From the sequence record LC727699.1: a stretch of 64,000 nt of DNA, one strand, 5' to 3'. The notes below the pieces were generated by a model that saw only the letters and a program-made list of their open reading frames with translations, searched no databases and was not told where the DNA came from. Positions 55,536 through 61,385 of this stretch are shown one piece after another. Both the position numbers and the translations under genes were made by a program. The stretch's first letter is position 1. Each line of letters begins with the position of its first letter.

Positions 55536-57416
55536 ATGGCTGTTAACGAAAACGAAATCGGCACCGTTCAAACTCAAGCTACCGCTCCGGCTCCGCAACC
55601 CACTGCACAACGTCAAGCTCAACGTCCGGCTGGCGCACCTGGGTCCACTACTGGCATTAACCATCTAATGCGTCGCTCTGGTCGGCTAGATGGCTCTGAT
55701 GCTCGTTCAGCAGATGCCCTACAAGTATTCACTAAAGTAAAAGAAGAAGCAATCCGCCATCAGGACCTACCTGATGACTTCGATATCCATCGTTTCGATC
55801 GCGATGCACAACAAGTGGGTATGGCTGGTCTACTCATTGTTAAACTAGCTAAAGATATCAATGGTTCCATGAAGGCATTCGTTCGTACTCTAGTACTCGA
55901 TAACCTACCTGGTACTCGCATCCGTCCCCGTACCCACAAAATCAACAATGGTCTAACTGATGACATCATTGAAGAGAAGGTACTACCGCGTGATGTATTC
56001 ACTGCTCAATACTGGAGCAAGATCGGCGAGTTCCTACGGAACCGTTACAACATCCCTGGTCTAGAAGTACTATCTGCCGGTCCACGTGCAGTGTATGCTG
56101 ACTTCGACTTCAAAGATGAACTAGCTGTTAAGAACCTACTAGTTGAATCCGTTAATATCTGTGAAGATGCTATTGCGCGTCGTAACAATGAGACTCCGTT
56201 CTCTATTGCGACCCACATCAAAGCAGAAAACGAACAGCTTACCTGCAATCTAGACTACAATGGTATTCCGGTTAAAGATAGCTGTGGTAATCCGATCCGT
56301 TCTGACCTGGTCATCTCCACTAGCCGTGGTAAGAAAACCAACGTACCTGAGAACGAGTTCTATGATACCGATAGCCAGCTAAACCAAGTTAGTCTATTCG
56401 TAGATCTACATTGGACTCCGACCACTGGCCAGCAACAAGGTATGTTTGGCGTAACTCTACCTGGTGCAGTTCTACCTCCGCAGTTCACTCCTTACATCGT
56501 TATCACTGACGTTCGTAAGGCATCCTGGATCCAAGCATGGACTCTAGAAATGTGGCTGTTCGCACTTGGTAATGCGTATCGTGCAACTGCATCCCAGGCA
56601 TGGGCTCGTACTCTAATGCCGAAGATCGCTACTAGCAAGATGCGTGATATTGGTGCACTTGGTTATTACTCAGAGCTAGGTAAAGCGATTGAAACTCGCA
56701 CCGAAGCATTCATGGCAGACGATAGCAACTTCGTAATGCTAATGAACAAGATGGTTAACCAGAACCCTGCATTCCAGATCGATATCGATCCGATGGGTGA
56801 CAACTCTGCTCTTGAGCAGGTAGTCCTAGATGCAGCTGGTGGCGTAAACCAAGCTCGTGCAGTTAGTCTGATCTTCCAAGCTCTAACTAACCTATACGGC
56901 ACTGATTTCCGTCAGTTCTATAATCTAGCTGAAGCTGGTCCGATTATCTTTGACAACCATCATGAAGTAGACCTCGGTCACTACACTGATGAGCATGGTG
57001 AACTAAGCGACCGTCGTGATCTCGACGTTCTAGGTGCCATGAACATGTCTGAAGGTAATGACCAAGAGTGGAAGACCTGGTATGCTACTCAGGTAGGTAA
57101 TGACCACATTGTGCGTCGTATGAATAACAGTAAAGGCTTCGACAAGATGTACCTAGGTAACGTTACCTATACTGGTCGTGCTCGTCGTCTAACCTTTAAC
57201 CCGAAATTCATCACCGCAATGGATGCCGCAGCAGCAGCAGCTGGTGTAACTGTAACCATGGAAAACCTAATTACCAACTTCGGTCAACAGCGCTTCGCTG
57301 GTTACACCGGTATGGGTAACATGGCTGTTTCTGGTAGTGCACAAGTTGGTATGGCTGGCAGCATGGGTCAAACTTACGGCGCTCCTTCCTATAACGCACC
57401 GGGTACCTGGTACTAA
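55536..57416 (+). CDS. chmA: Chimallin, major phage-nucleus shell protein (phiKZ gp54)
   Basis: 626 aa; segments resembling 201phi2-1 gp105 as recalled ([62 protein letters not shown]); next to the nvRNAP subunit. Confidence 0.95.
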
Positions 57417-57425
57417 TAGGAAATA

Positions 57426-57767
57426 CCTCGGTAGATAGGGATGTTAAATAAGTAACATCCCGATTCTAATACTGCGACCCGGTTCACTTCAGTGATAACG
57501 GTTAGGAGTAGGTTCCGTGAAGTAATCGACTAGTGGACTTAGTCTAGGTCGACCTATCACTACACGAGGATGATAGATCACTTAACCGAAAGGAGTTACT
57601 CAAAAGGTGACGTGTGATCAAAAACTACAATGGATGGTAAATGAGACTAGTGCCGGTATGCTACAAAGAAGAGCGGAGGTTAAGCTTTGTAGATGACGCT
57701 AGGCTCGGGCCAGGCTCCGTTGGTGGTCCATTGTAAAAACTGATATAGCGGCTCCTTCGGGGGCCGC
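57426..57767 (+). ncRNA. Candidate multi-domain structured RNA downstream of chmA, ending in a UUCG terminator
   Basis: No ORF; nested long-range helices (see findings); terminator GCGGCTCC-TTCG-GGGGCCGC at 57748-57767. Confidence 0.55.
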
Positions 57768-57809
57768 TTATATCTCCTTTTTTTGTTAATCGATAAATAG
57801 GAGTTTGGT

Positions 57810-58946
57810 ATGGGTCTTTATGCCAAAGTTGTTGATCATAATGAAGTTCATGATCAATTTACGGGTAAACGAATTTATGCCAATGATTACAATACGAGTA
57901 ACTCAGATGAGAAAGAAGAATTTGATAGGCATTTCTATTCTCATTTCCAAGATTCAGAAGCAATTGAAAGTAGTGTAAGCTGTGATTGTCGAGCAATCGA
58001 AGACGCACATAAACTCGGAGTAATCTGTGATATTTGTAATACTCCAGTTGTCAATACTTCTAGCCGTCCTATCGAACCATCAATGTGGGTTCGTACACCA
58101 AAACATGTACGTAGCCTAATTAACCCACGTTTAATCATTATGCTAACCGGATATCTAGTAACTAAAGAATTCGATTTCTTAGCATATCTAACTGATACTT
58201 CTTATCGATACGATGTAGAATCTATTGGTTCTAAAGAAACACGCAGGAAAGTAGATAGGCTACTGCATCGAGGATTTGAAAGAGGATTAAATCACTTCAT
58301 TGATAATTTCAATGAGATCTTCCAATTCCTACTAGATGCAAATATTATCTCTAATAATAAATCCGAATTCGCTCAATTCGTTGCTCAGAATAAAGATAAG
58401 TTATTCCCTAAATATTTACCAGTTCCTTCTAAACTCTGTTTCGTAGCAGAATCAACCACATCTGGTACTTACTTAGATAAACCAATTGAAGCAGCAATTG
58501 ATGCTACCTTAACCTTCGCTAGTATTGATGCATCATCTGTACCACTTAGTCCAATTAAAGCTCAGAATAGGACTATGCGAGGACTAAGACTATATGGCCA
58601 GTTCTACGAGATCTACGCAAAATCACGAATTGCTCAAAAGCCTGGTCTTGCTCGGCGTCACATGTTTGGTGCTCGTCTCAACGCTACGGCACGTGCAGTA
58701 ATCACTTCTATTAGTGACCCGCATGATTATGATGAACTACATATCCCTTGGGGGGTAGGTTGTCAATTATTAAAGTATCATCTAACCAATAAACTAAAAG
58801 CAAAGTTTAACATGACAACTCGTGAAGCATTCTCATTTGTATATGAGAATGTACTTCAATATAACCAAATCATTGCAGATCTATTTAAAGAGCTAATTGC
58901 AGAAGCAGCCCCTTATAAAGGGATGGGTTGTACTTTTCACCGAAAT
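57810..58946 (+). CDS. Non-virion RNA polymerase beta'-N subunit, exon 1 (phiKZ gp55-like)
   Basis: Zn-finger CDC...CDIC; RRHMFGARLNATARAVIT; ends CTFHRN immediately before intron 1. Confidence 0.9.
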
Positions 58947-59251
58947 TAATTTGTATATTAATACTAAATGGTTTCCTTGTAATAGAAATATTACTCGACA
59001 AAACTCCTTTAATTGCTGGGACATCTCAATGAGACAATCAGCAGCGAAGCTTTCCAGAAATGGATTGAACGTTCAACGACTATCGAAAGGCACGAAAGTG
59101 AACCGAGTAGAGTAGAGTCAAGTGACTCGAAATGGGGAGCACCTTACTGGGTAATGCCAAAGGTGAAGATATAGTCTGGTCTGCATGGTGACATGCAGCT
59201 GTCTGTTACTAATAGACGGGATAAGCTTAACGAACTTATCTGAACACAACG
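58947..59251 (+). mobile_element. Group I intron 1 (305 nt, no ORF)
   Basis: P AATTGCTGGGA 59011, Q AATCAGCAGC 59036, R GTTCAACGACTAT 59071, S AAGATATAGTCT 59166; P1 GAAAT/GTTTC with U.G at the splice site; terminal G. Confidence 0.9.
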
Positions 59252-59359
59252 CCAACCCTTCAACGTGGATCCACACAGCAGTTCTTTATTACCAAAGTAA
59301 AAGATGACATTAATGATAATTCTATCAGCATGTCAGTATTATGCTTGAAAGCGCCTAAT
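59252..59359 (+). CDS. nvRNAP beta'-N exon 2 (36 codons, PTLQRGS...LKAPN)
   Basis: Restores RNPTLQRGS (beta' NRxPTLHR-like motif) in frame; absent from the ORF track. Confidence 0.9.
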
Positions 59360-60731
59360 GGACAATTGAATAACTAAATAAGGGTAAAAACAATGGATCA
59401 AAACGGAGTAGTGTCCGTCTTTGATCCGGCTTCATTTAAAATTGAATGGCGGGATATTCCTGGATACTCAGCATATGAAGCTAGTAACCTAGGAACAATT
59501 CGTCATAAGCGGTTAAATAGAATATGTAATTTCTTCCTTACTAAAACATCGATTGGGACATATCTCAATATTGGTGCAAAAAATGATGAAAAAACATCTA
59601 AGAGTAAGGGAGTTCATATATTAATCTGTTTAGCTTTCCATGGTCCATCACCTGGACCAGATTATGAAGTCAATCATAAAGACGGCAACAAACATAATAA
59701 TCTACCATCTAATTTGGAGTGGATGACTCGTGGTGAAAACTTAGAACATGCTTACAAAAATGGATTAAGAAAAGAAAATAGACGAGTAATTGCAACTGAT
59801 GTTACCACTGGTGAAAAGACTACTTATTACTCGATGAGTGAACTTGCTCGGGCATTAGGAGTTAATAAAAATACGGTTTGGGTTATTATACGTGATCATA
59901 AGACTAAGCCGTATAGAAATAGATTCACATTTGAATTTATTACCGGTGAGACTAAGATTGCTGATCGAGATAGTACCAAGACGGTTTATGTTTTAGACTA
60001 TAAGACTAAGACATTGCATGTGTTTCATAACTTAGCAGAAATGGAACTTGCACTAGGTACTAAACGTAATAAAGCCTATTACCATCTAGTTAGAGGTAGT
60101 AAGGAAATCATGGATGGTTTGGTATTCTCATATACCGCTAATCCTGAAGATTTCCCTAAATATACTCAGAAAGAAATTGAAGCCTCATTTGGAAAACCTA
60201 GTAATGGAAAAGGTACTCCAATTGAAGTAACCGACACCATCTTGAACACTACCAAAGTGTATCCGAGTATTCCACACTTTGCAAGAGATGTCGGTATTAA
60301 GCATCCGAATACTGTTCGAAGAGCAATCTTTGAAAAGAATGGAGTGCTTGATAAATACCTTATTAAGTTAATCAAGTCTAGTTCCCCTAATGAGTAATCA
60401 TTGGGATGAGTTCTCTCTAATTGCTGGGATATCCTGTTAAACTAATCTACCACTGCGAGTCGAAAGACAAAGCCAAGGTTTGAAAAAGATTAGGTAGGGC
60501 CAATCAGCAGCCAAGCTCCGTAACATTCCATTTAGGAATAGGAGAAGGTTCAACGACTATTACGGTATCAGGTGCACCGGTCCTAGAAATAGGATGTAGA
60601 GTCAAGTGACTCGAAATGGGAGACACCCCACTCCGAAAGGAAGGGTGAAGATATAGTCTGGTCTTCTAGTGAAAGCTAGAGCTGCACGTAATGGTGCGGG
60701 TATCAATTAACGACTGATACTGAACAATACG
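59360..60731 (+). mobile_element. Group I intron 2 (1372 nt) carrying an HNH endonuclease ORF
   Basis: P 60419, Q 60502, R 60548, S 60648; terminal G at 60731; splicing restores NADFDGD. Confidence 0.9.
59393..60397 (+). CDS. Intron-encoded HNH homing endonuclease (NUMOD4-HNH with C-terminal HTH repeats, I-HmuI-like; phiKZ gp56-like)
   Basis: YEASNLGTIR; HILICLAF; VNHKDGNKHNN..SNLEW.T..EN; repeats YYSMSELARALGV and YPSIPHFARDVGI. Confidence 0.92.
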   Translation: MDQNGVVSVFDPASFKIEWRDIPGYSAYEASNLGTIRHKRLNRICNFFLTKTSIGTYLNIGAKNDEKTSKSKGVHILICLAFHGPSPGPDYEVNHKDGNKHNNLPSNLEWMTRGENLEHAYKNGLRKENRRVIATDVTTGEKTTYYSMSELARALGVNKNTVWVIIRDHKTKPYRNRFTFEFITGETKIADRDSTKTVYVLDYKTKTLHVFHNLAEMELALGTKRNKAYYHLVRGSKEIMDGLVFSYTANPEDFPKYTQKEIEASFGKPSNGKGTPIEVTDTILNTTKVYPSIPHFARDVGIKHPNTVRRAIFEKNGVLDKYLIKLIKSSSPNE

Positions 60732-60953
60732 GCTGATTTTGACGGCGATCAATTGAATCTTACGTTAATGCCTGATGTGTATCTAACTAAAGCAACTGAA
60801 CGCATTGCACCACACACGTGGGTTCTATCTATTGATGAACCACATGAAATCTCAGGTAACCTTGAATTACAGGGTCCTGTTGTAGAAACAATTATTAACT
60901 GGGCACATGAGAAGTATTTACCGCCATTAGAAGAATGGCTAAAAGCAAAATAA
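60732..60953 (+). CDS. nvRNAP beta'-N exon 3 (ADFDGDQLNLTLMPD...; phiKZ gp56.1-like)
   Basis: Catalytic DFDGD motif lies just upstream of the track ORF 60753..60953, in the same frame. Confidence 0.92.
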   Translation, partial: ADFDGDQLNLTLMPDVYLTKATERIAPHTWVLSIDEPHEISGNLELQGPVVETIINWAHEKYLPPLEEWLKAK

Positions 60954-61001
60954 ATTAATAGGGGAGTTAGACTCCCCTATTATTTCTTTGAGGCTGGTAG
61001 C

Positions 61002-61385
61002 ATGCATGATTTAGTTATCTATTGGAAAGCTCATGATGGTTACTACATACAAGATGAACATGGTGAACATCCTGTAACTTTCCAATTTGCAGAAATTAAT
61101 TGGAATTTCACCGGAGCTTATGAATACGGTGGTTCTGAATTAATTGATGATCACTTAAGATTTGGTATAGATTTCAAAGTACGTGATATTGAATGGCAAA
61201 TTAGGTTTGATTTAGACGGTAAATTTACTCTGTACAATATGTCAAATAATGATCGGGATGATACCCTTGTAATTCCAGCTACTTCAAAATTTGCACAATT
61301 CTTTAAAAAGACAGGTAAACATGTAATTACTAATGAAGTTATCACTATTCCAATCAATTGTTCTTTTGATAAACAAATCTATTAA
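61002..61385 (+). CDS. Hypothetical protein (127 aa)
   Basis: GAGG SD. Confidence 0.75.
   Translation: MHDLVIYWKAHDGYYIQDEHGEHPVTFQFAEINWNFTGAYEYGGSELIDDHLRFGIDFKVRDIEWQIRFDLDGKFTLYNMSNNDRDDTLVIPATSKFAQFFKKTGKHVITNEVITIPINCSFDKQIY

Follow-up and report, generated by a model that had tools for sequence, protein, structure and literature searches.

Two group I introns split the beta'-N gene of the non-virion RNA polymerase in a phiKZ-like phage, in what may be a wider intron hotspot around the catalytic loop

The DNA examined here (the window) is a stretch of 64,000 nucleotides (nt) of record LC727699.1 from Pseudomonas phage sp. LC, a phiKZ-like phage whose region 57600-61200 is 98.4% identical to phiKZ over the parts that the two share. 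At 57810-60953 it holds a gene in three separated pieces which, judged from sequence comparison, is the orthologue of phiKZ gp55 and encodes the N-terminal half of the beta' subunit of the non-virion RNA polymerase (nvRNAP). We propose, with a probability of roughly 0.85, that this gene consists of three exons and that the two group I introns between them are mobile, self-splicing and members of one related family; each would have to be removed before the subunit could be made. The parts of the locus, with sizes in nt or amino acids (aa), are as follows.

57810..58946, plus strand: exon 1 of nvRNAP beta'-N (phiKZ gp55 orthologue), 379 aa, ending ...CTFHRN, from the list of open reading frames (ORFs)
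58947..59251, plus strand: intron 1 (site A), a group I intron of 305 nt without an ORF, UAAU...ACG, matched by Rfam RF00028
58970..58976, plus strand: predicted internal guide sequence of intron 1, GGUUUCC, paired to GAAAU, where exon 1 ends, with a U.G pair at the splice site, from the minimum free energy (MFE) fold
58979-58994, plus strand: predicted P2 of intron 1, with a GAAA loop, from the MFE fold
59252..59359, plus strand: exon 2, 108 nt, 36 aa (PTLQRGSTQQFFITKVKDDINDNSISMSVLCLKAPN; PTLQRG...KAPN)
59360..60731, plus strand: intron 2 (site B), a group I intron of 1372 nt with an endonuclease gene between its 5' splice site and its ribozyme core, matched by Rfam RF00028
59393..60397, plus strand: HNH homing endonuclease (phiKZ gp56 orthologue), 334 aa, intact and wholly inside intron 2, from Pfam
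60386..60405, plus strand: hairpin CCUAAUGA-GUAA-UCAUUGGG, from sequence inspection and an alignment of 13 phages
60732..60953, plus strand: exon 3 (phiKZ gp56.1), 73 aa plus stop, starting ADFDGDQLNLT

The exon boundaries are fixed by several kinds of comparison. The original prediction, made from the letters of the window and its ORFs, gave these insertion points and a product of 379+36+73 = 488 aa, and both are borne out by the ORFs, by comparison with phiKZ and by PDB 7OGP chain A, deposited as a PHIKZ055/PHIKZ056.1 fusion with a 20-residue tag: compared piecewise, the three exon translations equal its residues 21-399, 400-435 and 436-508, with 100% identity over 488 residues. The joined LC protein is also colinear with about 49 intron-less homologues, including that of PhiPA3, with no indel at either junction. 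In addition, intron-less alleles set the junctions independently, since exons 1 and 2 are contiguous in phiKZ, and exon 2 and ADFDGD are contiguous in OMKO1. At intron 2 the boundary has a 1-nt ambiguity (G|G), which was settled by requiring a U at the end of the 5' exon. As predicted, both introns are inserted in phase 0 after an AAT (Asn) codon, and the motif NADFDGD is formed only by the joining of exon 2 to exon 3. Both introns end in ...ACG. An in-frame TAA directly 3' of exon 1 forms the start of intron 1. Exon 2, which has neither a start codon nor a ribosome-binding site, is the barrel segment between the conserved motifs RNPTLxRGS and NADFDGD; across 14 phages its protein is invariant, and its DNA differs at no more than 11 of 108 positions, always synonymously. 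Sites A and B fall in the two most conserved motifs, RNPxLxRGS and NADFDGD, which at least 80% of the full-length homologues retain. Three other accounts of the gaps can be set aside: an intein is ruled out by the stop codons after each exon, a frameshift by the size of the gaps (305 and 1372 nt, matching ribozyme models), and an assembly error by the identical structures in many independent genomes.

That both gaps are group I introns, as had been claimed, is confirmed by their matches to Rfam RF00028, which score well above its gathering score of 50 and lie far beyond chance: 88.9 bits (E 2.8e-22, at 58949-59198) for intron 1 and 79.1 bits (E 2.3e-19, at 60360-60681) for intron 2, each over the full model (positions 1-253 of 253). 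Both end in G (omega-G, 59251 and 60731). The shared P/Q/R/S cores noted earlier were found as identical strings at 59011/60419, 59035/60501, 59071/60548 and 59165/60647, and the 25-nt repeat (59112-59136 = 60596-60620) was confirmed and is the longest string common to the two introns. Intron 1 was also rightly described as lacking an ORF, no endonuclease-like frame being present in the ORF list. Folded with its flanks, it gives an MFE structure (z = -2.7) with the P1 pairing GAAAUUA:UGGUUUC, a U.G pair at the splice site, and recognisable P2, P3, P8, P9, P9.1 and P9.2. Compensatory changes occur in 15 of 50 predicted pairs (in P2, P3 and P9) in an alignment of nine site-A introns that includes two metagenomic phages with 48-57% protein identity; this analysis covered the site-A introns, the copies of intron 2 being too similar for one. 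The guide GGUUUCC is invariant in all site-A introns, including those of the metagenomic relatives with 48-57% protein identity.

Introns in hundreds of records from T-even, Enterococcus and other phages can be aligned with the core of intron 1, at 60-80% DNA identity, and the putative subgroup is IA2-like. The core also shows 79% identity to the intron of the nvRNAP beta gene, gp71/73 (phiKZ AF399011.1, 65442-65671), and the KTN4-type core resembles phiKZ 186376-186509, a candidate intron of the virion RNA polymerase (vRNAP) gene gp179. Going by these resemblances, the RNA polymerase (RNAP) introns of the phage may be one family. No description of intron 1 was found in the literature that could be searched.

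Intron 2, in contrast to intron 1, is present in phiKZ; with 98.2% identity to the gp56 intron, it is, by its sequence, that already known element. Its endonuclease agrees with phiKZ gp56 at 331 of 334 residues and carries NUMOD4 (PF07463, 2.4e-5), HNH_3 (PF13392, 4e-14) and three NUMOD1 domains (PF07453, 2.8e-29). The best candidate for its guide is UCAUUGGG at 60398-60405, which can form 8 base pairs (bp) with CCUAAU|GG at 59354-59361, and we infer that the P1 pairing of intron 2 lies here. GUUC before P2, suggested by analogy with the site-B intron of the metagenomic contig L016, was also considered as a guide; it forms only 3 bp with CCUAAU in Phikzvirus, and UCRUUGGG was preferred. The 5' arm of the hairpin at 60386-60405, CCUAAUGA (60386-60393), copies the end of exon 2 and at the same time forms the last codons of the endonuclease, whose stop codon lies in the GUAA loop. 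Thus the candidate guide can pair locally with this exon mimic as an alternative to exon 2, and the hairpin is, on its sequence, a possible alternative-pairing switch.

In the mechanism we favour, the 5' splice site of each intron would be held in P1 with the guide, and guanosine attack would be followed by exon ligation after the terminal G. Excision of both introns from the pre-mRNA would yield the 488-aa subunit, and only then would the Mg-binding NADFDGD exist; on unspliced RNA, translation would stop after residue 379, before the catalytic loop. Intron 2 would in addition supply an HNH/NUMOD homing endonuclease, encoded in its P1 loop.

For intron 2, splicing in vivo is supported by assembled RNA-seq contigs from phiKZ infections. 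In RNA-seq run X9 a 3681-nt contig of depth 33.9 runs through exons 1, 2 and 3 and joins 59359 to 60732, while the intron contigs have a depth of about 16. The other study's run X1 has a junction unitig of 59 nt, at depth 143 (intron depth 91), made up of the last 29 nt of exon 2 and 60732-60761. The junction predicted earlier for intron 2 (CCTAAT|GCTGAT) is therefore matched exactly by contigs from two phiKZ studies. The joint 58946|59252 in the same contigs is phiKZ DNA without intron 1, and not a product of splicing. Native phiKZ gp55 from infected cells has been reported as 56 kDa (PMC4666361), a size that fits the spliced product of 488 aa; the annotated ORF, at 420 aa, would give a smaller protein. 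Intron 1, for its part, is present at near identity in seven further independently isolated, plaque-forming phages, each with the in-frame stop after exon 1. Since the phage cannot do without the subunit, and since the window-type intron is found in eight independent isolates, we infer, strongly, that intron 1 splices. The statement in the original prediction that such splicing would not be new in kind holds for intron 2, known in phiKZ, and fails for intron 1, which phiKZ does not have.

Several points weigh against this interpretation. The RNA evidence comes from phiKZ, with an intron 98% identical, rather than from LC, and it consists of assembled contigs rather than raw reads. Furthermore, ONT-cappable-seq of phiKZ gave no evidence of splicing at gp56, gp72 and gp179 (Putzeys et al. 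2024, PMC10914365); the short-read contigs from two studies conflict with this result, as the exact gp55/gp56.1 junction is present in them. A transcriptome of a phage bearing intron 1 was sought and none was found, all clear RNA runs being from phiKZ, and two low-depth runs marked "RNA?" hold only the unspliced exon 1/intron 1 boundary and resemble metagenomes. Finally, position 60400, which was compared together with 60388 and 60406 in 13 phage alleles, is A in 10 of them and G in phiKZ, KTN4 and KEN49. In LC, A60400 would stand opposite the splice-site U of intron 2 and give U-A, whereas the phiKZ-type G gives the canonical U.G wobble; splicing could thus be less efficient than in phiKZ, or the P1 assignment could be wrong.

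The presence or absence of introns across relatives, a check proposed with the original prediction, turned out to be a patchy polymorphism of three sites: A after FHRN, B after KAPN and C after ADFDGD, all within 126 nt of coding sequence. None of 44 distinct Phikzvirus genomes is free of introns, much of this census being span arithmetic calibrated on the 13 loci that were read rather than a reading of every genome. Intron 1 is absent from phiKZ and 26 other Phikzvirus genomes, and its window-type form, at least 99% identical, is found in PA_ZH1, kmuB, Bobae, PhiPizzaParty, KEN19, AttikonH10 and PaZh_1. Site-A introns have two core variants. Variant A1, the window type, is without an ORF in eight phages; in Churi and GUMS it has an HNH ORF of 277 aa. 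Variant A2 has an HNH ORF of 273 aa in KTN4, fMGyn-Pae01, ANB1, SL2, OMKO1 and fnug and is ORF-less in KEN49; where present, the site-A HNH ORF always lies in the P1 loop, between splice site and guide. The site-B endonuclease is intact in LC, phiKZ and KTN4, nonsense-mutated in KEN49 (codon 18) and in Wadjak2 and ANB1 (codon 28), and deleted in sp. 30-1, T2P, KEN19 and others. Site C (60749|60750) is empty in the window and occupied in OMKO1, fnug, PA7, W10-2, Brmt, MRostami-2023c and KEN49.

KEN49 (PP456877.1, locus L013 2289-4525) has introns at all three sites, with three Rfam matches. Its micro-exon GCTGATTTTGACGGAGAT (L013 4120-4137) is 18 nt long and encodes exactly ADFDGD, and the guide of its site-C intron, GUCUCC, lies 8 nt downstream of the splice site and pairs with GGAGAU. 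The neighbouring introns also appear to have exchanged parts. When the P9 regions of the window (59165-59251 and 60647-60731) were compared with those of loci L004, L005 and L002, the P9 of A1 (window-type) resembled that of type-2 site-B introns and the P9 of A2 (KTN4-type) that of type-1 site-B introns, swaps that point to recombination between paralogous introns. As a side observation, the first 336 nt of the site-C intron (L012 3023-3358) are 92% identical to a segment of PS119XW (MN103543.1, 44612-44948) and phiLBG22. PS119XW and phiLBG22 are 301-kb Pseudomonas phages, and the rest of the gp55 locus was unmatched in the searches made; this similarity suggests that the site-C intron was recently transferred between more distant phages.

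The pattern extends beyond Phikzvirus. Homologues of the exon-1 protein fall into 119 clusters with 28-100% identity. Forty-nine of the 119 are full length, with PF00623, while in about 60%, at 28-70% identity and from wastewater, marine and other metagenomes, the ORF ends inside a stretch of 43 codons, at five distinct points: after RN (about 21 clusters), PN (about 11), NAD (about 17-22), ADFDG (about 4) and ADFDGD (8). Several of the truncated clusters have the read-through tail NFLNCW, the conserved P3/P4 core read as protein. Three metagenomic contigs (L014, L015 and L016) were verified, and chimallin lies upstream in each. On L016 there are two HNH ORFs and three Rfam matches, and in this relative, 57% identical, the site-A intron carries its own HNH ORF of 398 aa; L015 has an HNH ORF and one Rfam match after NAD; and L014, from Tara Oceans, has an ORF-less site-A intron that was recognised by eye and is missed by Rfam at the gathering threshold. 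These ORF ends and contigs suggest that the intron hotspot is family-wide.

A more speculative extension, which we put forward tentatively and regard as possible rather than probable, is that the 43 codons around NADFDGD are a battleground of at least five competing intron/endonuclease lineages, inserted after RN, PN, NAD, ADFDG and ADFDGD, and that intron occupancy is itself selected. Occupancy would protect a phage against the nucleases of co-infecting relatives, and its selection would explain the lack of intron-free Phikzvirus genomes and the filling up of sites to the point of the 18-nt micro-exon of KEN49. In the same scheme the site-B guide, held in a hairpin with the exon mimic, could couple splicing with endonuclease translation following export from the phage nucleus.

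How intron 1 spreads had been explained differently. According to the original prediction, it hitch-hikes by co-conversion with the intron-2 nuclease. In such a model intron 1 is not self-mobile and is carried along whenever that endonuclease cuts, 108 nt away, an allele without intron 2. That distance does lie within the co-conversion tract lengths generally known from T4 and SPO1 homing, and in the window the ORF-less intron 1 adjoins an intact intron-2 endonuclease, but the model was not borne out and now looks improbable: the site-A lineage has its own HNH genes, and its flanks are not co-converted. Eight Phikzvirus genomes, and the metagenomic relative L016, have a site-A intron with an HNH ORF of its own. 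Moreover, an ORF-less site-A intron together with a full-length intron-2 ORF is found only in LC and KEN49, the KEN49 ORF having its stop at codon 18, and in seven of the eight window-type ORF-less carriers intron 2 has no endonuclease. Site B is occupied, or altered by the site-C intron with synonymous changes, in every Phikzvirus record, so that the intron-2 nuclease would have almost no empty targets. The comparison of LC with PA_ZH1 is especially direct: the two copies of intron 1 share 99.3% identity, yet there are 9 differences in the 108 nt of exon 2 and 10 in the final 150 nt of exon 1, the nearest lying 3 nt (exon 2) and 16 nt from the intron ends. A near-identical intron between divergent flanks indicates that the intron moved with almost no flanking conversion and that exon 2 was not co-converted with it.

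Thus, rather than a passenger of intron 2, intron 1 would be the endonuclease-free form of an independently mobile site-A element with the target CGAAAU|CC (Arg-Asn|Pro), a reading that follows from the HNH genes which other site-A members carry in the same P1 loop. It could have spread by vertical inheritance, by recombination, or through a site-A nuclease acting in trans during co-infection. The signs of homing are indirect, comprising the patchy distribution, the degenerate and deleted endonuclease copies and the synonymous divergence around the sites. Exon divergence is about 1.6% across the first 987 nt of exon 1 and climbs to 7-8% in the exon sequence adjoining the introns, and synonymous divergence that peaks beside introns is the pattern expected from repeated homing-associated exchange.

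A further alternative, also unlikely in our judgement, takes up the ideas of the original prediction that splicing could gate middle/late transcription and that exon 2 could be skipped. It assigns the twin introns a regulatory role, with splicing efficiency timing the appearance of nvRNAP and the ribozyme of intron 1 using the 3' splice site of intron 2 to skip exon 2. The skipped product would be an in-frame protein of 452 aa (...FHRN-ADFDGD) with part of the catalytic barrel missing. Both introns end CUGAACAnnACG, and the candidate intron-2 guide can also pair with the exon mimic that overlaps the endonuclease stop codon; in phiKZ RNA-seq, intron depth is about 1/4 to 1/2 of exon depth, so much of the RNA is unspliced or excised intron. 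However, no skipped junction was seen in the RNA data, which come from phiKZ and not from a twin-intron phage. Since phiKZ and 22 other isolates live with one intron and PhiPA3 with none, there is no evident regulatory need, and the pattern of presence and absence resembles the turnover of selfish elements rather than a conserved regulatory design. Last, that intron 1 does not splice at all, so that the exon polypeptides assemble non-covalently or the LC-type allele is defective, is highly improbable: no RNA evidence for its splicing was found and jumbo-phage RNAP subunits are already split into several polypeptides (PMC7598289), but exon 2 has no translation start signals, its 36-aa segment lies inside the catalytic barrel and is invariant in protein, eight independent viable isolates carry the intron, and the ribozyme fold is intact and supported by covariation.

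The surroundings of the gene include two further features.

55536..57416, plus strand: nuclear shell protein (chimallin, gp54), the upstream neighbour, from the annotation "nuclear shell protein" in relatives
60956..60982, no strand assigned: terminator-like hairpin, bidirectional, which would close the transcription unit, from a consensus scan (12-bp stem, then a T-run)

The chimallin gene served as a synteny marker and lies upstream of the nvRNAP beta'-N gene in all relatives examined, and in metagenomic contigs PF25677 adjoins the interrupted gene. Exon 3 and the gp57 orthologue are separated by 48 nt in the window (60954-61001); this spacer is about 390 nt longer in Wadjak2- and KEN19-type phages (L004 3364-3752) and holds an extra 189-nt ORF in T2P, GUMS and Bobae (L007 2598-2786); the final 15 nt of exon 3 are also divergent in the phages with a longer spacer. 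Elsewhere in the window, three tRNA genes at or above the Rfam gathering threshold lie on the minus strand (556-629, 955-1027 and 1040-1121).

Among known systems, the closest is phiKZ gp55/gp56/gp56.1, which shares with the window intron 2, its endonuclease, all three exons and an identical protein product, and differs in that site A is empty, exons 1 and 2 form one ORF, and G rather than A stands opposite the splice-site U in the candidate guide. In Staphylococcus phage Twort, the subject of work cited in PMC11620839 and PMC12908238, orf142 reportedly holds three group I introns and undergoes exon skipping, and nrdE holds two. Twort would resemble the window in having several related group I introns close together in one gene with short internal exons, and it is said to offer a precedent for skipping; the host gene and the phage lineage differ, and skipping is reported there and an idea here. 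The DNA polymerase introns of SPO1/SP82 (I-HmuI/I-HmuII) and those of T4 td, nrdB and nrdD likewise combine HNH_3/NUMOD-type endonucleases with an essential gene of a virulent phage, and they resemble the window family as related introns with divergent, degenerate or absent ORFs; unlike them, the window family has its endonuclease ORF in the P1 loop, with the 5' splice site on one side and the guide on the other. In PhiPA3, gp210 is an HNH endonuclease in a group I intron of the vRNAP beta gene, for which nicking and a competitive effect have been demonstrated (Birkholz et al. 2024, PMC11620839), and the same work suggests that the presence of an intron at a site can play a part when co-infecting phages compete. 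As in the window, an HNH intron there adjoins the conserved catalytic-site aspartates of a jumbo-phage RNA polymerase, but gp210 belongs to the virion polymerase, to its beta subunit and to a single intron, whereas the endonuclease of the window is known from its sequence.

In summary, the splitting of a polymerase gene by introns was already known; intron 1 adds a case for which no description was found in the literature searched, and the wider hotspot is the more interesting result. The interrupted subunit belongs to the enzyme responsible for transcription of all middle and late genes in nucleus-forming jumbo phages and carries its catalytic Mg-binding loop; some of these phages (OMKO1, KTN4 and others) have been used or considered for therapy. 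The gene is routinely annotated as two to four unrelated "hypothetical proteins", which the exon structure corrects. In addition, its three sites, with intact, nonsense-mutated and deleted endonucleases and swapped ribozyme modules, form a natural allele series suited, following the work on PhiPA3 gp210, to work on intron homing, on immunity and on competition between nucleases in phages that keep their DNA inside a protein nucleus. It also raises the question of where group I splicing takes place when transcription and translation are physically apart.

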